Shown: positions 1,600 to 64,000, numbered from the stretch's first letter. The stretch: DNA of 64,000 bases from Eukaryota sp. TZLM1-RC (GCA_040285825.1 JAUPSS010000007.1:520501-584500), one strand, 5' to 3'. Made by a program: numbers and translations. The notes: generated by a model not told the origin, from the letters alone.

Positions 1600-4251
1600 T
1601 TTTGGTTCTTTTTGTCCTCCTTTTTAACAAAATTTCGTAAATATTTCCGAAGATTTAACTAATATAGCACCGAGAAATCAGTCATCCGAGAAATTAAGTG
1701 AAATATTTGAAGAAAAATGCTTTGACAACAAATGGTCCAAGGCTTTGTCAGCTTTAAGTCCCGGAGTTAAAGCACCCAACAATGAAAATACAATAGATCA
1801 ACTGAAAATACTTCATCCTTATGAAGACCCTATAATGGATCAAAATTTCTACAGCACATACTGGGAAAATTATCCATTGATGCCATCAGAAGTTTTTTCA
1901 AAGTGGTTATCAAAAAGAGACCTCGTGGTAAGTCTGCCGGACTTTCTGGTATTACTATTGATCATGTAAAAGCCGCGATTATTTTTTCAGAAGATTGCCT
2001 TGATTTATTGACCAAATTTTTCAACCAAATATTATCTGGTCAACGCAAATACCCAAAAGAATTAAGAAGTTCTCGTTTGACTGCACTTGTCAAAAATTCA
2101 AAAATGGATGTTCGTCCTATTGCAGTCTCTGAGAGCTTACACAATATTTTTTCTGCGTGTTGCTTAAGCAGGTTCAATGAAAAAGCTAAAAAGATTTTAT
2201 TACCCTTTCAATATGGTATAAATACTACAGATGGACTCTTCAGCGATATTTGCTACTGATGTCTTATTTCGTCAAAATGAATCCAATGTTTGCATGTCAT
2301 TGGATTTTAGTAATGCTTTCAATTCACTAAGTCGTCGCAGTTTCCATGGTGCTCTATTGCAATATATGCCGGAATTAATACCATATTTTCAATCAACATA
2401 TTGCACATATTCTAATTTACATTTTGGTAACAACATTTTGAGTTCATCAAGTGGCGTAAAGCAAGGAGATCCGTTAGGACCTCTGTTGTTTTGTTTGGCC
2501 ATTCATCCTATTTTATTGCAAATTCAAGAGATGTTTCCTTCACTAAAAATGATTGCATATATAGATGATGTTGTGCTTATTGGTGATTTAAATATTGTGA
2601 AACAAGCAACTGTATGTTTTTAAGAATTATTTACCAAAATTGGTCTCCGACTTAATTTACTTAAATGTGTTTTGTTATCGAATTCTCCAGTTTCCACAAT
2701 AATTGATGATATTGAAATTCAAGCCAAATTATATTCAATTGATGCTATTCGTCATTTGGGTTCGTTTTTAGGAAATAATGATGAAATTACCAAAAAATTG
2801 TTTGAAAAGTTGAACTCAATTTCTGACAAAATTGTCCGAATGATGAATTTAGATATAAAAAACACATTAAATTTACCATTATAAGACTGTGTTTTAGTTC
2901 CAATTTTAATCATATATTTCGATCTACAAATCCTCTCGTCACTAGACCTTTGGCTCAAAAGTTTGTGGAGTTACGTGCAAAAGTTCTGTCTCAATTACTG
3001 GGATGAAAAATAATTCAAATTCCAGATCATGCTTACCTTAGTCCACATTATGGTGGTTTAGGGTGGACGAAGGCTTCTATTGTTACCTCAAGTGCTTTTG
3101 TTGGTGGATACAGAAATGCAATCTTTGAGTTTTCCCAAAAATTTGCAGATTGGGAAGATTTATTGATGATAACGCAAAGTTCCACTGTTTTTGCATAACG
3201 TGAAGAAATTACAAGAATTGATGTAGAAAATGGGGTCGATGTTTTGCCCAATCATTCAATGGCAATATTCCCAAAAAAATGTTTTAAATTTGAAGGCCAC
3301 TCTTCGAACATTACAGAAACGATTGACTGGAATGTATGAAGAAGATCTTTATAATAATATATGCAGCTCGGCTGTTTTAAATCAAGATCTTCACTCATTG
3401 TTATTGGAAAAGGGTGTTTGTGAAAACTAGTCATCAGATTCTTCACTTTTTGTAGCCATTGTACCACGAAGATTTGGATTGTGTGCCACTAATGAAGCAT
3501 TTGTAACAAAAATGAGATTATATTTCAATAATCCCATTAATCAATTATTATCAAAAGAAAAATGTATTTGTTCGAATTCACCTCAACTCACTTTGCGCCA
3601 TGCTCTGAATTGTTCCAAATTGATAACTGATCGTTTTTCATTACATGATGCTGTTAGAGACACTGTATTCAATATGGCACAAACTGCAGGAATTTCGTGT
3701 ATCAGAGAGCCCCTGCTGAAGGAAACACTTTCTCTGAACAATTTTGGCGCTGATGATAGAGGTGATGTATACTGTGATTGGATTGATAATTCTGAAGCTA
3801 TTGTTGACTTTGGCTCATGTAATGTTGCAAATGATACTTTGGTTCACAGAAGAAAACTTAATCCTGTGGTTGCTCTGGATTTTAAAGCAAAACAGAAACA
3901 TAGAAAATATGATAAAGATATTGAAGAGGCTAATGTCGATAGAAATACACAGCTGGTTTTTATTGCTTTCCCATTTTCGATAAATGGAAGATTATCAGAT
4001 GAAGCAGAAACTTTTTTGAATGACTTCCAAAAATTGGTGCAAGAAATAACAATGAAAAGACTTGATATTATTTTATGGCGTTCACGGATTCAATTTGCCA
4101 TTTTTAATAGATTACCACGGTTTTTCAATCGAATAAGAGAAGCTTTAGCTAGACAGCAAGCAGATCAAGATTTTGCTGAGGAAATCTTGGTTCAATGATA
4201 GTCGTCCCATTAGTTATGAGTTAATTTAATTAAGTGTGCAAATTCAATAAA
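1600..4251 (+). mobile_element. Non-LTR retrotransposon, RT plus C-terminal Zn knuckle and RLE (CRE-like/R2 group), family A, disrupted
   Basis: RT motifs VRPIAVSE, LDFSNAFN, GVKQGDPLGPLLF and YIDD. CCHC knuckle CICSNSPQLTLRHALNC, then LHDAVRD, RGDVY and K..K.RKY endonuclease motifs. Broken across ORFs 1745-4198. Short 3' UTR ends at AATAAA (4246-4251). Confidence 0.92.
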
Positions 4252-5122: not shown

Positions 5123-6346
5123 TTAAGTGGTGAAAGCTTCAGCTAAAAATATCGAAGCAGGTCTGGAGCCCCAATATGAGGTATGTGATTTAAGGCCATC
5201 AATTACTCTAGAGAACGATCTCTGTTCAATGACGTAATCAAACCGACAATTAAGATCGTTATCGTGTGGAGATTGATGAACTATCCTCTTAACAGAGCTT
5301 GTCTGACCTTCTTCTTCATCGTCTAAATCACATGCTGCAGTATAGTCTACGCCATCTTCACTGGAAGAGGAAATGGAAAACTTTGGGGAGGTGTTTTCTT
5401 CGGCCGTAACAGGTATATCAGCAATCTCAATATCAGCTTTGTTCATGAATCTTTTGGCAAACGTAGAGAATCTACTCGAGGCAGTACTAGGGTTGTAACA
5501 TACCACAGGATTCATTGGAACATATTTCCCATCAAACAGTGGTTCTATTCTATACGCCAATGCGTCCTCCTTATTCAAGAGGGAATACCAGTTTGCACAA
5601 ACAGGAACCCTAATACATTTGTGGGGAATAACTTCTTCTTCCAAGTTCATCATCATTGATAAGGCAGTTCCCATAGAAATAAATGTGTGAATGTGGAAGG
5701 GTAGCGGTGGTACTGTGACGGACTCACTGAGGCTGTGACAAAACATAGGCTCCACATTGTTATCAAGGAGATGGTCTATCAAATGAATCATGTTACCTTC
5801 ACGATTAAAGGCGTCTTCTATTGGAGTTTCAGGTTTACATTGCCTCGATAGGATGTAATGTGCTATTTGTGCACCTTGTGAGTGCCCAAGTACAGAGACC
5901 TTTCCTTTAAAATCAGGGAAATCCATAAGAATGTTGGAATAAGCTTCGCACATTCTTCTCGTAACCCATGCCACTATCTGTTGACGATGTCTTTGTAAAC
6001 ACCAGAGAACCACATCTAAACATAGATTTTCACTAACAGTTCGCCATAAACCTAGTTGAGAAGGGTCCTCTGAGCCTATACGCAGTGCAGCGAGCCAAGA
6101 TTCCTTGTCTGAATGGATGGCATTATGCCATGAAATCGGAATCAGTTTGATGGAATCCAATGATTCATCATCACCTGTAAAGTATTGCGATATGGACTGA
6201 TTAATATTAAGCTGAAGCATCTCAGCATTAGTGATGTGTTTAGTTTCCTGTCCAATTCCAAAGACAACAAAGACTATATGAGTGGGAGTAGTGTTATCGA
6301 TCACCTCAGGTTTGTTGTGGCGTCGAAACAAAGATCCAAAAGGCAT
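5123..6346 (-). CDS. DDHD-domain intracellular phospholipase A1 (PA-PLA1/DDHD1-like)
   Basis: Intact 407-aa ORF. HIVFVVFGIG N-terminal motif, lipase GHSQG (GxSxG), and DDHD motifs DALAYRIEP, RFDY and SHTSYW. Confidence 0.9.
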   Translation of the reverse strand: MPFGSLFRRHNKPEVIDNTTPTHIVFVVFGIGQETKHITNAEMLQLNINQSISQYFTGDDESLDSIKLIPISWHNAIHSDKESWLAALRIGSEDPSQLGLWRTVSENLCLDVVLWCLQRHRQQIVAWVTRRMCEAYSNILMDFPDFKGKVSVLGHSQGAQIAHYILSRQCKPETPIEDAFNREGNMIHLIDHLLDNNVEPMFCHSLSESVTVPPLPFHIHTFISMGTALSMMMNLEEEVIPHKCIRVPVCANWYSLLNKEDALAYRIEPLFDGKYVPMNPVVCYNPSTASSRFSTFAKRFMNKADIEIADIPVTAEENTSPKFSISSSSEDGVDYTAACDLDDEEEGQTSSVKRIVHQSPHDNDLNCRFDYVIEQRSFSRVIDGLKSHTSYWGSRPASIFLAEAFTT

Positions 6347-13999: not shown

Positions 14000-16021
14000 T
14001 GCTCAACATTGAGTTACTTCCAAGAACCATATGTTCTTCGGGATGACAATACCATCCGTGTAATTATCAGAAAGAGAAAGCAAAGTAACTATTTCAGATA
14101 AGAAGGGGACGATCAAATGGATTGCATATTCTACGACAGTGACTGTGATCAAAAAAAATCACAGCTATACCCAATAAAATTCAAGTCCACATGTACCTGG
14201 ATCTTACTATATCCAATATGTCTGAAAACCCGAAACTCAAGCCTTCAGTGGGCAATAGGTTTTAGCAAAGACATCCTACAAGAGCTTATTAGACAAAAAG
14301 GTTCGGATAAAAAACCGAGTGTCAAATATACAAAATTCGAGGCAACTCGCATCAATCCTGTCTACATCAAAAAAGAAAGAAAGACTGTCCAGAAGATACA
14401 CCTTATGTCGTCAAAATCCTGATTCAACATACCTGTGATGCACTTGCTGTTGAAACTAAAGCTCCAAGACCTACGATTTCCTTTCATGCAAGTCATTCTC
14501 GAGTGAAAGATAGAATAAAGACAAAACCATTTTTAGCAACTTCCGAACTCTTGCCTTTATTGGACGAGATAGCTCATATAAAGCTCTCTGAAAGAGTAGC
14601 AGTTAAAGTTCGAGCTAAAGCTCGAGAGATTGTCTTTGGTACTCACAAAACAAACTACGCACGGCTTTATTCTCTTATACTCCGTATTCAACAGTGTAAC
14701 CCTGGTTGTCTTTGTGTGTTGGAGAAAAAAGCAGACAATACTTTCCAACGTATGTTTATTGCTTTTGGTGGATTTTCACATGGGAGTCAGTTCTGTCGTC
14801 CACTCATTCAAATTGATGGAACCCATTTGAAAACAAAGCATAAATATGTGATTTTATGAGCAACAATGATCGACGCTCAGCGTTAGCTGTTCCCAATTGA
14901 AATATCTATAGTCTCTGGAGAAAATTACGACAAAATGGAGATGGTTTCTTTGTGAGCTCAAGAATTGTATCAAAACAGAAGTAACAACCATTATATCTGT
15001 ACGATCTATTTTTTCCGATCTATTTCCGATCTATTTTTTCCTGGTGCGTTTCAAAGCCGCCATTTGACCAAGAACCATAGGCGTTAAGTATACAAGTGTT
15101 TTGTGGCAAGCAAGGGCAGAAACAGAAACTAAATTAAAACATCCAACTTAATCGAGTCTCTTAATACATAGCTCCTTGTTGCCAGAGGCTTGCCTGTAAT
15201 TGCAATGATCCATTCTATCATGTATAATCTAAATCGATGGTTTAAAGTTCGATATCAAGGTGAAATCAGATCTGCAGAAAGCTATTCTAGATAATGTTTG
15301 GGATAAATTGAAGGATGAAGTTGTAGAATGTAGCAAGCTAAAGACGAGAACAATAAGAAGAAATGACAACATCTTCGCCCAAGTAGAGGAAGCTCAGAAA
15401 AGGTACACAGTGAATTTTAGGGAGCGTTTATGTTTCTGTGGAAAATGGCAACGCTTTGGCATTCCACGTAGACATGCTGTCGCTGCTTTGGAAAAACTGA
15501 ACCAACCAGTGTTAAATGGAGTTGATTCTCACTAAATTAAAGAAACTTAACTAAGAACTGATGAGAACTTTATTGATGCTGTAGAGATTCAAGATTTGAA
15601 TGAAGACAATATGCTGCCTCCAACTTACAAAAAAGGCTCGTGGAAGACCACCAACAAAAAGACTGCAGTCTGTTGAGGGAAGAAAGAAAAAGGTAAAGGT
15701 AACAAATGATGGTGATGTAAGTGAGGTTGACAAAGACATGTGAAATGAGTCTATCATTAACATAAGTACAATTCATGATGTTTTTGACGAGTCCTCAAGT
15801 TCTAAAGAAGATTATGGAAGTGAAACTGAGCTGGACGAGGACTCAGACGCTTAGTGGAATAAATTAACCGCTGAATTGGTGTACATTTAGATTGCTTTAT
15901 AAAGATATGTTCGATTGTTGCAACTTGGGCACATGCATGTGCAACCAAAATTGATGAGTATGTAGAAACTGGACACAAGTGGGGCAAAAATTGACAAAAT
16001 GGGCATAAGTGAACTTGTCCC
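14000..16021 (+). mobile_element. Degraded MuDR-type Mutator element
   Basis: FQRMFIAF...CRPLIQIDGTHLKTK (first catalytic D), SWIM finger CFCGKWQRFGIPRRH, AT-hook-like ARGRPPTKR and an acidic tail. Putative terminus ...cttgtccc near 16021; ends are approximate. Confidence 0.85.
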
Positions 16022-16144
16022 ATATAAAGATAAACAGAAATTACTATGTGTTTCATTCTCGATAAATATTCTAAAAAATCTGTTCCCCCATTTTTGATAT
16101 TTCCCAATTAATTTCCGACTTCATGGGTTTTTCTTTTTCTCATT

Positions 16145-17225
16145 ATGGATGGCTGTGATGTCTTATCTTTGAAAAATCATGCCAGTCCAGACACAAAAAC
16201 AAGGGCCATGAGCTGCCTTCTTCATCATGGAGTCCAACAGTCTAAAATTGCACTGTTCTATCAGGTCAGTCAATCCAACATCAGTAGGTGGAAGCATGAG
16301 TTGATGTCGAATCCTGATGAAGTTGGTGTTTGTCAAAGAACTAGTCGCATCTTTACAAAAGCACAAATAAACATCTTAGTTGCCTATGTTATTGACTACC
16401 CCCATCAATATCTTCTAGAACATCAAATATGTTCATATACAATATGTTTATATCACAATTGAATGTTGATGTTTCTAAATCCACAATTTCTCGAATAATC
16501 ATTCAAAACGGCTTAAGCCACAAGCATTGTGTACCTCTGATGTACTAAGCACGATTCAGTCTGGTATCCTCTTTTGCCTATAAGATTCAGTCTTACTTCG
16601 GTCTTATTCTTTTGCCACAATTACTCTTTATCGATCAACTGTCATTTTCTCCCCAACATTTCCAACGACAGTATGGGTATTCACCAGTAGGATCACTTGT
16701 TCCTGCTAAGCAAGCTCCACAGATAAATGGAAGTGTAAGTTTATTAGTAGCCATTGATGTCAATGAATATGTCTACATTATATGAAAAAAGTGCATTATT
16801 CCAGATTACAATACATGTCATTTCTGGAAGATCTGATTACCGGTGTCTTCGTACAGGATAATGATGGACTTAGGTCTCGATGGGTCCTCGATGGACGTGC
16901 CATTCATAGAGCCCCAGCTCTAGAAACGGCACTTGTGCACCAATGTGGTATCAAATACGTGATTGTGCCTCCTTATACACCCGAACACAATCCTATTAAA
17001 AGTTTTTTTAAACAACTTCGGAACAGGGTTGTTGCAGAATCACATCATAGGCCACCTAAAACTCTTGCTAATACTATTCAAATATTGCATTCAGTGCTGT
17101 TAAACATGAAGTTTGATTGTAAACCTATCTTTGACAGGTCGGGATGGTATCATTGGGAATATTTCAAGTCCCCATATTTAAATAGTGAACGTTTTGTCAG
17201 TCAAGCAGTATTTTCGAGAGACTAA
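16145..17225 (+). pseudogene. IS630/Tc1-like DDE transposase, copy 1 (disrupted)
   Basis: HTH QSKIALFYQVSQSNISRW, then LLFIDQLSF, and VLDGRAIH...PPYTPEHNPIK (D-35-E position changed to K). C-terminal FDRSGW...SPYL is shared with 61790-62887. Confidence 0.9.
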
Positions 17226-17360
17226 TAAATACAAAGTTAAAAATCTATTGTTTTTTAAAAATCTATTTTATTTCAATTATTAGAATCAACATTTAATGTT
17301 GATTAATTAATGTTGTTATGTTGTCATTTAAGACCTCTTACATCTATTTCAACTATAACG

Positions 17361-18184
17361 TTAACTTGGCATAGATGATCCTTCATGAGGATCAGCACGA
17401 TCTTCAAGCTTTTGAAATAACCTTTTGGCAGCATTTCCAAAACTGATGATCGATGATGGACGCTTCCTGGAAGTCACCATAAAAGTGGCTAAGCGACGAA
17501 ATAGGTCTTGACGCTGATGAAACTCAAAATCATTGCATTCTCTAGTCATTTTGACCATCTCTGATGACAGAAACTGTGCAATAAAATCGTCTTCTTCCAA
17601 AATATCTTCAACAAGTATGGATTTTGTTGTTGTTGAAAACAAAGCTTCGATTTCTGCTGGAAGTCTTGTGGGCTCTGACTTGCCTTTGGAGCAGAGTTCG
17701 GCCCACCTATCCCATACAGCAGCAGCTGCAATGAGACCTGGGTTAGAGTCTTTAAGATTTTCCGGAGTCACAGCGAGTAGTGTATGTTGAGCCAATTCCT
17801 TCTCCTTCTCTTCGTAGTCTTTTTTGTTAATGTTAGAAGCGAACACCTTTCGTAAAATGTAGTGACAATATCATTGGCATGTGCTAACCAGGTCCTTAGT
17901 TTTGCAGGGTTTTCCATCCAATGCCTGCTTTTCTGAGAGCACTCGTAAGTGAAATTTGAGTCTGGGTGTACATACTTCTTCTTCCTCTTTGCTGTTTCGA
18001 TATAATCTTGCTGTAAAAGTGCATTCAGTTTTGAAACTAACTGAAAGTTATCAGCGATGTTAGTGAGATTGAACTACAGTAATCTTGAACTGGTGTTCAA
18101 GATGGGTTTACCGCCTTTAATCCCGTGATAAACTACAATGATTTGTGCTTGATCCGGAGTTGCAGGGGTTCAGATAAAAAACAT
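17361..18184 (-). pseudogene. Uncharacterised partner gene convergent with transposase copy 1 (about 270 codons, 2 stops and 1 frameshift)
   Basis: Manual translation from ATG 18184: MFFI*TPATPDQAQIIVVYHGIKGGKPILN...NKKDYEEKEKE...AVWDRWAELCSKGKSEPTRLPAEIEALF. Similar to 62999-63483 and 20460-21083. Confidence 0.7.
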
Positions 18185-18258
18185 CAAGTGCGAAAGTGTG
18201 AAATTGTTGGGAAATTGTCGGGAATTTGCATTTTGATTGAGACGCACAGTAGGAGAAA

Positions 18259-18936: not shown

Positions 18937-19510
18937 ATGGATAACCCTCTTGTCACACCTGACAATAACTCACATCCTTCACCTAATGCCATTTGCTCAA
19001 TGGCGTTTCCTGATGAGGCAGCAGCAATTCTTGAGTACGAAAGTACTCCTTCATTCACAGCTACTGGAAACACTATGTCTGTCATGGTGAGAGATGTGAG
19101 CTCTTCCCTTATATACGTGTGGTTAAATTGGAGAGAAAATACAGTTACATTTTGATCGCCCTAAGGATGTTTGCTCAATATTCTTAAAACCTCTATTTAC
19201 ATGGCTTGTTCTGTCATCTTGAGGAAACTAATGTTCTTCTTAAAACGGACTCAATTGTCGCATTCCACTTTATGAGTGGTCAAAACAAATCTTCGGAGCT
19301 TTCAGTCTCAACAGTCGCCAATTGGATCAAAAATGATCTAATCCGCGTTAAAGTTGAAGTATCCAACATAACAACGAAGCACTACAGAACATTTATTCAT
19401 TCCCTAAAAGTCACTAATCTCAAAATTTGGACAGCATCAGAGCTAATGTCTGCGAACCCACATCTTTCATGTTGTACTGAGTTTTTCAACTTTGGACCAA
19501 TAGACCTACA
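18937..19510 (+). pseudogene. Degenerate tyrosine-recombinase-like ORF
   Basis: LSVSTVANWIKNDLIRVKVEVSNITTKHYRT...ELMSANPHLSCCTEFFNFGPI resembles the C-terminal part of DIRS/phage-integrase tyrosine recombinases (S.xTIxxWIK...FTAHSTR...TFxxFYNxPI). Frameshifted near 19150-19210. Confidence 0.45.
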
Positions 19511-19912
19511 TCCAAAAAACACATCAATTGGATTCATCTCGGGACAATTCGGGGAAAGTATTCTATATTATACATCTGTACGTCGCATTGCTTCGTAAAT
19601 AAATGGATGTTTATGTATTTTACAACCATCTAAAAAATTATTGAGGTCTGCCTTCTGTTGTTCTTAGTAAACCTTGACACAATAAATCCTTCAAAAAGTC
19701 TATGAAGAGAGATCTTGAAAAGTACCCTTTTCTGTTGTGACAAAGAAGGTAACCATCAACTGTGATGGCTACAACAAAACCAACAAGTCCATCTTCAAAT
19801 TGGGACTGTATCAAAACATCCTCTTCACCACATGGGGATCGACTGTACTTCCTTGGAAAATCTTCAACACAAAAACTCACTTCATCCATAAATACTAATT
19901 GTACTGTTACAG
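19510..19912 (-). pseudogene. Catalytic (DDE) half of IS630/Tc1-like transposase copy 2, inverted
   Basis: QLVFMDEVSF...VAITVDG...DFLKDLL, then after a frameshift SIIFLDGCKIHKHPFIYEAMRRTDV*YRILSPNCPEMNPIDVFFG (34 residues between the second D and the third acidic residue). Confidence 0.85.
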
Positions 19913-19946
19913 TTCACAACCTCCCTCCTCTCACACAGCCCCATCA

Positions 19947-20458
19947 ATGCCATACACTTTCGATCTTCTTTTATCCCATGGCAATCTTCCTTCTCTACGT
20001 AATGTACTTATTTCTATGGAAAAGTTTCAATCATCAGCTCTCTCGTCCTTTAGATATTATACTACTGAAGATACTGGAGTGAGGGCACTTTATACAGTGT
20101 TTTTCCTTGGTCGAACCCAAACCGAAGTTGGTCAACTGTTTTGGGTTCACCAAACGACAATTTCGAAGTGGGTACATGATCTTTTTGAACCCCACAATAA
20201 ATCAACAGTTTCAAAATGTGTTTTGACAGACGCAGGAGGTGAATTTCTGAACCATTTATTGAACCCCCGTTTTTTTTGTTTAAGAGTGATTAAGACTATT
20301 TTGAAAATTCATTCAAATAAACAAGTATCGGTTTCAACCATATATAGATTTTTGGTAGAGAAAAGAAATTTCACCGGCGAAAAGCCGCGCATGGTTGTGC
20401 AAAAAAACCAAAGCAGAACTCATTCACAGTTTTTCCAACTACTTTCGTCGTAATCTTG
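19947..20458 (+). pseudogene. N-terminal (HTH) half of IS630/Tc1-like transposase copy 2
   Basis: MPYTFDLLLS...TEDTGVRALYTVFFLGRTQTEVGQLFWVHQTTISKW...VSVSTIYRFL aligns with the 61790 protein. Ends AELIHSFSNYFRRNL versus KELIHNFELSFRRLF. Confidence 0.88.
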
Positions 20459-20459
20459 A

Positions 20460-21083
20460 AGAAGGGAATAGCATCGGCACTGGCATTACCTTGAGCTATC
20501 CTAGTTGTTGAAGTAAGCCAATGTTCGTTATAGGCCTTATATTTTGGTCACCATTTCCTAAACGCTGCTTCAGAGATTTTTTTGGTTTTTTGTGTTCTTT
20601 TTCTTGTGAAAACTTTTCATTATTTTCAGTAGTCACATTATCAACAATTATTTTGATCGCAATAACCGCCTGGTCAGTCTTCGGTGCTGCAAACTTTCTT
20701 TGAAAGAGTTTGACATCAGCACAAGATTTCTAATTAGTCACACTCATAAAGTGAAACGTTGGGACAGATTTGTCGTGTAGGACTATATTGTTCTCAATAC
20801 AATACTGCTTAAATCGTTGAATAAGCAGTTCCTTGAAGAGATGGGGCTCAACCTCTTCGGGAGAAGAGTAGAATATAGACTATTGCTCGTTGAAGGTCGG
20901 TTTCCGAGCGTTTGAATGGGGTGCATAAGTAACATCTACGACAGCTGAGGTCGCACCAGCGAACTTTTGCAGTGAAAAAAAGTAGTGTTTTGGGAGTACT
21001 TTTTGGAGACAATATGGGTGCTTTGGGGAACACTACGGGTATCTAGCTGTCTGGGGAGACGAAAAAAGCTTTTTAGACGTCAT
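20460..21083 (-). pseudogene. Uncharacterised partner gene convergent with transposase copy 2 (3' truncated)
   Basis: Manual translation: ...FAGATSAVVDVTY...RKPTFNE...NNEKFSQEKE / EAAFRKW*...LTSTTRIAQGNASADAIPFF. The last block matches SITRIPESIIPFL of 62999-63352. Confidence 0.55.
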
Positions 21084-21888
21084 TGATTTGGGTTTGAGTG
21101 AAATGAAAATTAAGGACCTGGGGTGCAAAGCACAGTATGCGCTCCACAATAAAACCGCAGTTACAAATTTGTTTTTCTTCCCCCTGGCATCAAAGTACTT
21201 TCTCCATTATTATTGTTCCAAACCTCCCTTTTCATGGTCCAGGCCATCTCAATGCTTTCTTAGCCATTATATAATACTGCTCTGCGTTGTCTCCCTCCTT
21301 TTTGTTGACTTTACTGTTGACTCCACTCTTTACATCATCCCTTGAAACATCTGTTTGGAGACAAATTGGTTCAATTCTCACAAAAATTTTGTTTCTTGTT
21401 CAATTTGACTTGACTATCAGCAGATGTTGACATTTCTCTTTTCATGAAAAGCTTGCTGTCGCCTTTAAATCGCTCTTGGAGCTTCTCAAACGGCCGCTTA
21501 ATAATGAAAATAGAAAGCTTGTGATCTCTTTTTTGAAAATTTCGTCAGTTGTTCTTGAAATAGAACCCTCACTCTTTGTATTGGATGTGGTTGATGGTAC
21601 AAAAAATTGTATGTGTGATAAAAAGCCCGCTGTAGAATTCTAAACGAATCTCGGAGCTTCTCAGACGGCCGCTTAGTAATGTCAACCATGTACTTTTTTG
21701 CTTTGCACTGGTTGTTCAATTTCCTTTTGAAGTATTGGCTACAGGTAGTGGAGTCGTTGGATAAAGTAGTTTTGAATTGTTGCAATAACGAGTTCATTTA
21801 ATAATACAAATTCCAAGACTTTAAAAAAATTTAAAAATCATCAGAAAAATTCTTCCTCCCTTCTTAGACAGGCTAAACTCCTACTTCC

Positions 21889-61644: not shown

Positions 61645-61789
61645 ATATGGCTTTGAAATGTGTAAATCTGTGGGAAAAAAATCTCTTCGGACAACCTGTG
61701 TAATTCACCTGTGGTCAATAATAGGTGAATTTTAATTCTCACCTCACAAATTTCTCACATCTTCTTTTTACTGTCCTTTATTCACTTCT

Positions 61790-62887
61790 ATGGGGGCCAC
61801 TATCGACTTATTGTTGTCTGGTAATGATCTTAGGCGCCTCAAAGTACACGCTAGCGAAGACACAAAGATTCGTGCGGTGTACACCTTAGTCTTCCTTGAG
61901 AAAACACAACAAGACGTTGCTGAATACTACTGCGTTGCACAGTCTACGGTATCGACTTGGTTACGCCAAGTATTTCCTAGTTCTGAATCTACTCCCAATC
62001 CTACATCACGCAATCTCTTCCAAACTCCTTCATCTCGTCACAAACTAAACGAAACAGCGTCCTCATTTATCCTCCAACTTGTGAAAGAACAACCTCTCCT
62101 TTTTTTACGCGAAATACGTAAGCTAGTTTTTACAAAATTTCACAAGAAAGTTAGTGTAACAACTGTGCACAGATTACTTATCAAAAACAATTTTACTCAC
62201 AAAAAATGTGGTAATTTGATGAGACGAGCCAAAAAAGAACTGATTCATAACTTTGAATTAAGTTTTCGAAGACTTTTTGGTGTTGTAATTCAACAACAAT
62301 TATTATTTATTGACGAAGTTTCGTTTAAATCAGAACACTTTGTGAGAAAAACTTGTTGGAGCCCTAAGGGAGTTCCAATTAATACTGAAAGACCGAACTT
62401 CAAGGAAGGGCAGGTGAGTCTCATGGTGGCAATTGATGTCAATGGACTAGTGATGTTTCATATAAAACAGGGTCATTTTGATCGCACAGGATATGTAAGT
62501 TTTCTACAAGATTTACTGCATCATAAATTATTATCAATTGAAGGAGGAGCTAGATCAATAGTGGTTGTTGATGGATGCAATATTCATAAAAGTGCATACA
62601 TTTTCAGGGCTGTAAAATTGGCTGGCTTAAAATATTTGATTTTACCACCGTATTCTCCTGATTGTAACCCAATAGAAGCGTTTTTTGGTCTGCTTAGAAG
62701 AAAAGTCAGAGACAATTCGTTACACAGCCCACTGCAAGGTGTGAATCTTTTACAGCAGCTATTACGTACAATGAATTTTAATTGCAGCAATTTATTTGAC
62801 CATAGTGGCTGGAAGGATTTTTGCCCATTCAGATCACCATACTTGCATGGTATAAAGGCAAACTTTTTCAAAGATCATTTGGATTGA
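61790..62887 (+). CDS. Intact IS630/Tc1-like DD34E transposase (copy 3)
   Basis: 365 aa. HTH QQDVAEYYCVAQSTVSTW and a second HTH LREIRK...VSVTTVHRLL. Catalytic FIDEVSF, VVVDGCNIH and PPYSPDCNPIE, with 34 residues between D and E. Confidence 0.95.
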   Translation: MGATIDLLLSGNDLRRLKVHASEDTKIRAVYTLVFLEKTQQDVAEYYCVAQSTVSTWLRQVFPSSESTPNPTSRNLFQTPSSRHKLNETASSFILQLVKEQPLLFLREIRKLVFTKFHKKVSVTTVHRLLIKNNFTHKKCGNLMRRAKKELIHNFELSFRRLFGVVIQQQLLFIDEVSFKSEHFVRKTCWSPKGVPINTERPNFKEGQVSLMVAIDVNGLVMFHIKQGHFDRTGYVSFLQDLLHHKLLSIEGGARSIVVVDGCNIHKSAYIFRAVKLAGLKYLILPPYSPDCNPIEAFFGLLRRKVRDNSLHSPLQGVNLLQQLLRTMNFNCSNLFDHSGWKDFCPFRSPYLHGIKANFFKDHLD

Positions 62888-62998
62888 ATAAAGTTTTGAT
62901 TAAAAATGTATTAAAAATAAAACAGTTTTAATTGATTTTGTATTGAAAATAAAAAAAAGAACTTTTATCTTCAAAAAACCAATACTATTGTACTACTA

Positions 62999-63483
62999 TT
63001 AATCAGTATGCTGAGTGTCTTCCGCAGCAGCCACTCTTTTGAAAGCTTCATTTACGTCACTGGATAAGGCAGCTTCTGAACTAGTTCTTTTACCCAAGCT
63101 GATAACAAAACAATTTAACTTCTTGAGAAAAGTAGACTCAAGTACATCAAGTAATTCAAGTACTTGTTCTCTAATCTTGAATAATTGAGCGGCTGAATAT
63201 TGAGCTACCTGTTCAGCCAATTCAACCGAAAACAGATTGTTTTTTGCATCACCCAGGAAGGGTATGATGGACTCAGGAATCCTGGTGATGCTTCCCTTTC
63301 CCTCGTTGATTATCTCCAACCAAGTGTTCCACAGGTGGTCAGCAAGTACCACCTTGTGACTGTTTCAACGTCTTGGTATAGAAGACTGATGGTAGTAGCA
63401 CCAAAACGTCGAGCTCCAGAAACTAGATAGTAATAAAGTTGGATTTGTACGGAATTGGGTGTACCAGATGCAACTAAAGACAT
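62999..63483 (-). pseudogene. Uncharacterised partner gene convergent with transposase copy 3 (internal deletion and frameshift near 63352)
   Basis: From ATG 63483: MSLVASGTPNSVQIQLYYYLVSGARRFGATTISLLYQDVE, then in another frame VLADHLWNTWLEIINEGKGSITRIPESIIPFL...FVISLGKRTSS. Aligns with 17361-18184. Confidence 0.7.
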
Positions 63484-64000
63484 AATATTTATGAAAGTGA
63501 ATGAAATGTGAGGTGAATGTGAAAGAGGGAGTGATATCTATTTGAGATGAAATTCACACTAAAATTCAGGTTCAACAGGGTATTTGATCAAACAGTGTTG
63601 ACCTAAATAATAACAATAGCTAAGCTGAGACAACTGGCTCTACCATTTAGTGCCCCGACTGTAGGTGAAATGAAATCAGCTCGGATAATTTTCAAGTTTC
63701 ATGCTACCTCAGCCAACATGTCCATAAATCAATGAACGATGAGCTTGATCAAATTGGTTTTTGAATGTACACCTCGATGGAACACATTATTTAGCCTATC
63801 GATCGTGAAAAATTGAATTATATTGAATTCAAGAACTCCATTTGAAGTGATTAAAGACAGGGTTCTTTGATCTGTTTCTAATTAATTCTGATGCAGTTGA
63901 TCAATGCAATTCGATCACCTCAAGTGGTCTTCCATTGTCAGGAAGCTCAACGATGACCAGGAACTCACTCTTGACAAATATCCTATCTTTAATTTTAATA

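Follow-up and report, generated by a model that had tools for sequence, protein, structure and literature searches.

Textbooks present IS630/Tc1/mariner elements as transposons reduced to the minimum: a single gene whose product, the transposase, is the sole protein required, and a target that reads TA. It is because the transposase suffices that Sleeping Beauty and Mos1 have become tools. DNA transposons with more than one gene are also familiar. In MuDR, for example, the genes mudrA and mudrB are convergent, and are driven from the terminal repeats. PIF/Harbinger, CACTA and the ciliate TBE/Tec elements are, like MuDR, multi-gene transposons (PMC7325037, PMC2836001). Harbinger mobilization requires both of the element's proteins (PMC2836001), and in the ciliate TBE1 and Tec elements a DD34E-type transposase is accompanied by extra ORFs, one of which, in Tec, lies on the opposite strand (PMC7325037).

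Here we describe a family of two-gene elements from the metamonad genus Skoliomonas. The DNA analyzed, referred to below as 'the window', is a stretch of 64,000 nucleotides from Skoliomonas litria TZLM1-RC, an inhabitant of a soda lake; it was compared with 12 fetched loci (L001–L012). Three Skoliomonas genomes enter the discussion: S. litria (TZLM1-RC), GEM-RC1 and TZLM3-RCL. We interpret the elements, at a probability of roughly 0.8, as an autonomous cut-and-paste family of the IS630/Tc1/mariner superfamily, comprising a DD34E transposase and a convergently encoded second protein, the 'partner', which serves the transposase in trans, either as a subunit that assists it or as a regulator. A second conserved gene is unusual for this normally one-gene superfamily. 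Multi-gene DNA transposons are already known, and the Skoliomonas family is a further variant of these, not a separate category. Judged by database matches, the family appears so far to be known from Skoliomonas alone. These metamonads were described only recently, and their genome papers give no account of the elements, mentioning transposon homologs only in passing.

Like Tc1, Sleeping Beauty and IS630, the Skoliomonas elements have a DDE_3 transposase of the DD34E kind, inverted ends and a 2-bp target duplication. They differ in having two genes instead of one, in duplicating mostly dinucleotides other than TA, and in their very short, imperfect ends, which start with CTGNG. The ciliate elements resemble them in that a DD34E-type transposase is accompanied by extra element-encoded ORFs, but TBE and Tec have three ORFs (those of TBE include a small ORF and one for a zinc-finger protein, those of Tec one for a site-specific tyrosine recombinase) to Skoliomonas' two, and inverted repeats that are long or 80 bp where those of Skoliomonas are short. 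Pfam-level searches of the partner detected neither the zinc-finger nor the recombinase domains of the TBE/Tec accessory ORFs. The likeness to PIF/Harbinger and MuDR lies in a non-catalytic element protein that is inherited with the transposase. Their transposase superfamilies are unrelated to that of Skoliomonas, which is DDE_3 and not of the PIF type, and ORF1 of Harbinger is Myb/SANT-like, whereas the same searches found no Myb/SANT match in the partner.

Boundaries and contents of the mobile unit

Copy 3 of the window (61696–63558, plus strand) is a whole repeat unit whose transposase is intact and whose partner has suffered an internal deletion. Its DNA is 98.2–98.8% identical to L001 and L002; the identity is bounded exactly by positions 61696 and 63558, and the flanks are unrelated. 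The left inverted end, CTGTGTAATTCACC (61696–61709, plus strand), comprises the first bases common to four S. litria copies, and pairs imperfectly with the reverse complement of the right end, (C)TGTGAATTTCATC. The right inverted end, ...GATGAAATTCACA, occupies 63545–63558 (plus strand). Copy 3 lacks a clean target duplication, and its last base differs from that of the other copies: a terminal C, where the other three have G.

The transposase gene (61790–62887, plus strand) encodes an intact protein of 365 aa. An earlier reading of the window from sequence alone had called it an IS630/Tc1-like DD34E transposase, and the identification is confirmed: the protein matches DDE_3 (PF13358, E 3e-26) and, with 123.7 bits where the cut-off is 100, the NCBIfam IS630 model (NF033545). 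The spacing from the second D to the E is 34 residues by count, and D175, D260 and E295 are invariant in the transposase alignment. The best solved relative is the catalytic domain of Sleeping Beauty (E 2e-14). The N-terminal region gives sub-threshold matches to HTH_32, HTH_33 and HTH_Tnp_Tc3_2 (E 0.0015–0.07), and a weak match to the DNA-binding fragment of Sleeping Beauty (E 0.0076). An annotated protein of Eukaryota sp. TZLM1-RC is 97% identical to it and there are relatives in GEM-RC1 and TZLM3-RCL; the nearest transposases outside Skoliomonas are only 23–30% identical.

An AT-rich spacer of 111 bp (62888–62998) separates the two convergent stop codons, and holds a 30-nt imperfect palindrome whose arms lie at 62884–62913 and 62918–62947. 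Beyond it, two minus-strand ORFs (62999–63352 and 63310–63483) represent two frames of one partner gene. The C-terminal part, residues 148–265 (63002–63355, minus strand), carries the W..W, IP and KRTSS motifs, matches the family profile at E 1.4e-34, and is 100% identical to the same residues of the L001 partner. The N-terminal 43 codons (63355–63483, minus strand) lie in the other frame and are 93% identical to L001 residues 1–43. At L001, another S. litria locus, the convergent partner ORF is intact and uninterrupted (5209–6006; 265 aa). In copy 3, 313 bp are missing at the junction 63355/63356, with loss of residues 44–147 and a frameshift. The same stretch, L001 5566–5878, is missing from L002, and this shared, identical deletion rules out an intron as the cause of the two frames.

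Comparison of copies shows that the same arrangement recurs in all three species. Pairs of copies at unrelated loci are 94.6–99.5% identical in DNA, and at least 98% identical in four of the five pairs. In each species the repeat unit takes in ~100 bp in front of the transposase ATG and 45–75 bp past the partner ATG; it measures ~2.18 kb when intact in S. litria (window 61696–63558, L001, L002 and L008), ~2.5 kb in GEM-RC1 (L003 and L009) and ~2.3 kb in TZLM3-RCL (L004 and L006). Both genes, then, sit within one mobile unit, inside its inverted ends. The alternative identity of the partner as a host gene beside which the transposon prefers to insert is ruled out, since the partner lies within the repeat unit.

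An inverted-repeat search inside the window alone gave no convincing ends. The expectation that aligned copies would define the terminal repeats and the target duplication was borne out. The ends are short, imperfect inverted repeats of the form CTGNG...CACAG: CTGTGTAATTCACC / CTGTGAATTTCATC in S. litria, CTGAGGTTTTCATTTTG / CTGTGCTTTTCAGTTCG in GEM-RC1, and an imperfect repeat of roughly 30 bp in TZLM3-RCL. A perfect 2-bp target duplication flanks eight of eight fetched copies. The duplicated dinucleotides are AC, GT, CA, GC, TA, GT, TA and GT; with TA in two of the eight, the length of the duplication fits the superfamily and the TA rule fails. In a small sample, the reconstructed target sites of L001–L009, alternating purine–pyrimidine steps are enriched: they make up 60 of 104, where the background is 45% (p 0.007). 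L008 and L004, which belong to different species, are both inserted before GTATGCAT.

The two genes begin 50–100 bp inward of the ends. Close in front of each stands a family-specific motif of 10–20 bp, the two occurrences being inverted relative to each other. In S. litria it is TCACCTCACA (window 61745–61754 and 63510–63519), upstream of both start codons. The corresponding pair is CTTTTCACTCA in GEM-RC1 (L003), TCTCACAGCC in L007 and TAGACCTTTCT in L011, and a pair occurs also in L006. The motif may act as a promoter or initiator common to both genes, or as an internal site for protein binding.

Pairing and conservation of the two genes

Whether one starts from the transposase or from the partner, the other gene is found beside it. 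Eight transposases of different lineages have a convergent partner directly downstream (L001–L007 and L009), and three divergent partners led to a convergent DDE_3 gene at L010 and L011, and at L012 in the form of a palindromic duplication. A six-frame scan of all loci with the family HMM confirmed the pairing and disclosed two tandem pairs in L011. Every transposase copy inspected, in the 12 fetched loci and the window, has a tail-to-tail partner beside it; the 'always paired' of the sequence-only reading holds for this sample of loci.

That reading had also placed three transposases in the window, each facing a minus-strand partner. This description fits copies 1 and 3. Copy 1 (16047–18249, plus strand) belongs to a different, old lineage, and both of its genes are pseudogenes. 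Its transposase (16139–17225) is broken into three frames. Its partner region (17382–18037, minus strand) contains a stop and a frame change; it gives E-values of 2e-41 and 2e-7 with the family profile and of 6e-11 with the L001 partner. Among intact partners, P0043 of GEM-RC1 comes closest. The right end reads ...GCACAG and is followed by TA, and TA also precedes the degraded left end, so the target duplication was probably TA. Shortly before copy 1, at 15260–15535, there is an ORF with a SWIM zinc finger, a feature typical of MULE transposases. An annotated MULE/SWIM gene likewise stands beside the L011 elements (L011:1–1265), and a hAT dimerization-domain gene neighbors L003; the elements occupy transposon-rich neighborhoods.

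The supposed copy 2 is, instead, two truncated elements joined head to head at 19.2–21.1 kb, because the two transposase halves lie on opposite strands, each with a piece of partner. The reversed element (19221–19901, minus strand) consists of transposase residues 170–301 (19508–19901, minus strand) faced by a partner fragment (19221–19472, plus strand; profile E 2e-11) that had been overlooked. The forward element (19947–21135, plus strand) holds transposase residues 1–161 (19947–20451) and an N-terminal partner fragment on the minus strand, with a profile match at 20739–20876 (E 1e-6), and terminates in ...AAGCACAG at 21135. A second, independent head-to-head structure occurs at L012:3955–7543 and, like that of the window (19221–21135), is joined inside the transposase gene. 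At L012, a palindromic duplication of 1671 bp, 99.94% identical, places two partner genes on either side of two transposase C-halves; in the window, the junction at 19901/19947 brings together two copies that have been truncated differently. Such structures could be products of aberrant transposition or foldback; the one at L012 could alternatively be an assembly artefact.

Within the window, tblastx finds marginal similarity between the partners of copies 1 and 3 (E 0.002), and none between the partner of copy 2 and the others, and therefore proof of kinship comes from outside the window. By profile, the partner pieces of all three copies are family members, at the E-values given above, and the mutual similarity that had been proposed is real; none of the three is an intact ORF. 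The motif blocks reported to recur in the same order correspond to conserved columns of an alignment of 25 family sequences.

Defective derivatives of the element have moved. The partner-deleted form is present at at least two loci, the window and L002, which are 98.8% identical, and L002 has its own target duplication; the partner is therefore dispensable in cis, perhaps altogether. L008, at a separate locus and again with its own duplication, has lost most of its transposase. L004 and L006, 99.5% identical, have reciprocal defects—in L004 the transposase is intact and the partner lies in four frames, in L006 the partner is intact and the transposase frameshifted—and these reflect either complementary decay or indel errors of nanopore assembly. 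Diverged transposase remnants adjoin full elements at L001:6841–7229 and L011:3178–3896, both on the minus strand; the remnant at L011 has its own partner at 2243–3049, forming a tandem element pair.

The partner has been kept over long divergence. In nine copies, representing eight lineages, its ORF runs for 258–402 aa without a stop codon, and these lineages are separated by about 1–2.4 substitutions per site. Pairwise identities are 20–35% among partners, and 39–55% among the matching transposases; in maximum-likelihood trees the median terminal branch is 1.89 substitutions per site for the partner and 0.85 for the transposase. The two trees contain no supported conflicting grouping, the sole informative comparison being the one shared supported pair, L005/L006, which is well supported in both. 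The pair L007/L010 is supported in the transposase tree and unresolved in the partner tree. Together with the position of the gene inside the ends in three species, the open frames in eight lineages bear out the proposal that the partner is a component of the element, co-inherited through deep divergence. Selection on recent copies was gauged by dN/dS. For the transposase, close S. litria copies give 0.15–0.24 (0.15–0.18 for copy 3 against L001 and L002); for the partner, L001 against L008 gives 0.38, from 6 synonymous and 8 non-synonymous changes, 14 differences in total.

The partner protein and its predicted fold

Searched against 1.84 billion representative proteins, the partner profile yields 55 matches, 37 of them at E ≤ 1e-10. 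The source was looked up for 22 of the 55, and 20 of these, all at E ≤ 1e-5, come from the three Skoliomonas genomes. The other two, both weaker, P0075 (1.6e-6) and P0081 (6e-5), are multi-stretch matches in metagenome proteins. Searches of Pfam, NCBIfam and PDB sequences gave no match, and a word-indexed protein search returned one close paralog only. The statement that no domain is recognizable in the partner thus holds at the level of sequence.

The 25-sequence alignment reveals a succession of conserved features: a Y..KGG..F hairpin, HP(D/E), L..W and AF..V.P.N; a longer block, I.V..L...NP...A...AW..WA..Y........IP; and, toward the C terminus, a basic RKR.SS.A.L motif and a terminal AED.H. 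N-terminal extensions differ among lineages. In GEM-RC1, the partner is lengthened to 402 aa by four tandem 81-bp repeats (L003:5242–5564, and the same in L009), 85–95% identical, that encode a Ser/Pro-rich unit of 27 aa after the conserved C-terminal motif.

An AF2 model built from the 25 sequences has a pLDDT of 87, and replaces an earlier model from five sequences (pLDDT 66). It predicts an N-terminal beta-grasp domain, a Trp-rich helical module, and a helix of ~45 residues (191–235). Residues 9–112 form a beta-beta-alpha-beta-alpha-beta unit in the model. When residues 7–113 were compared by VIA-align with 48,161 solved chains, the best nine were all PB1 domains (Z 6.0–7.7), superposing with an rmsd of 2.8–3.5 Å over 73–92 aligned residues, although Z-scores below 8 can reflect the common beta-grasp arrangement. 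With Foldseek, the best matches are the PB1 domains of p40/p67phox (E 0.011). Among predicted models the nearest is an Atlas cluster in which plant MULE transposases carry a PB1-like domain; BFVD returned weak, ubiquitin-like rows only. ESM Atlas feature searches with the whole partner, and with residues 113–265, gave no usable lead, and the helical remainder found no informative structural match.

Because the structural scores are middling, the N-domain is best described as probably PB1-like at the level of the fold only. It resembles the PB1 domains of p62, NBR1, Par6 and Cdc24 in that the predicted beta-grasp superposes on them, within the range of Z-scores given above, but in sequence the partner matches neither PB1 (PF00564) nor the PB1-like family (PF26130): none of the 25 members reached E ≤ 0.1 against either model. 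PB1 domains occur in the plant MULE-derived MUSTANG proteins (PMC4948706). The Skoliomonas domain differs from these in belonging to a separate protein, and not being fused to the transposase.

Possible roles of the partner

In the mechanism that we favor, the two ends of the element would serve as mirror-image promoters or leaders, co-expressing both proteins. The partner would work on the transposase in trans, whether by joining it as an accessory subunit or by regulating it. Oligomerization of the partner would be mediated by the PB1-like domain and the long helix, and contact with the transposase, or with the ends of the element, by the conserved middle module. Action in trans fits the partner-deleted (window and L002) and transposase-deleted (L008) copies found at separate loci. 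The logic may be comparable to that of ORF1 of PIF/Harbinger or MURB of MuDR. A transposase–partner complex, a check envisaged in the sequence-only reading, was predicted with no alignment. It scored 0.38, against 0.00 for the best control, which is rated weak support and falls short of a claim of binding; the partner folded poorly in it (pLDDT 37), and 57% or more of the contacts recurred between runs. A more ambitious version would make the partner an obligatory second subunit, a PB1-type self-assembling scaffold of the paired-end complex that relaxes the superfamily's otherwise near-universal TA rule to any alternating purine–pyrimidine dinucleotide. We hold this to be rather improbable; if it were true, the elements would be the first two-component Tc1/IS630-type transposition system.

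Different roles can be imagined for the same protein. Other DNA transposons limit their copy number by means of truncated or accessory repressor proteins, and the partner could be such a brake, an element-encoded inhibitor that titrates or mis-assembles the transposase. The putative co-expression from mirror-image ends would serve this purpose too, the modeled PB1-like domain and long helix would suit sequestration, and the copies with a deleted partner are of recent origin and now occupy two loci. In a selfish element, a pure inhibitor would be hard to keep intact across all lineages over so deep a divergence, however, unless self-restraint were strongly favored, and we consider a brake unlikely. 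The same spread of copies without a partner agrees with the idea that it is a passenger, a host or foreign gene captured once by the ancestral element, with no role in transposition. Gene capture by transposons does occur, but passengers decay, whereas full-length partner ORFs have been kept in the same position and orientation in eight lineages whose synonymous divergence is saturated. Nor did the partner-profile search find a homolog outside the host genus as a possible source, and we regard capture of a passenger as highly improbable.

The partner might, alternatively, address the host. VANC is an anti-silencing factor of the VANDAL Mutator elements, and the partner could be an anti-silencing or chromatin-targeting factor of this sort, or a nuclear-import adaptor. 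Its fast evolution, with about twice the branch length of the transposase, and its lineage-variable N-terminal extensions would fit an arms race, and the host might be bound through short motifs such as the conserved basic RKRxSS and the C-terminal tail. PB1-like domains, moreover, occur in plant MULE-type proteins (PMC4948706). Profile, Pfam and PDB-sequence searches, on the other hand, found no similarity between the partner and known anti-silencing factors, and the predicted contact with the transposase, weak as it is, points the opposite way. A host-directed role therefore seems rather improbable to us.

If the partner is, as we favor, a trans-acting accessory subunit or regulator, its interest lies in what it says about a superfamily thought of as minimal. 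A deep and diversified lineage of these transposons has kept a second protein through ~50% divergence of its transposases, with no insistence on TA. The IS630/Tc1/mariner superfamily can, it appears, evolve a two-component architecture outside the ciliates. The partners form an orphan family, numbering at least 55 clusters, whose fold is predicted with confidence, and for the annotation of Skoliomonas genomes the element family explains dozens of 'hypothetical proteins'.
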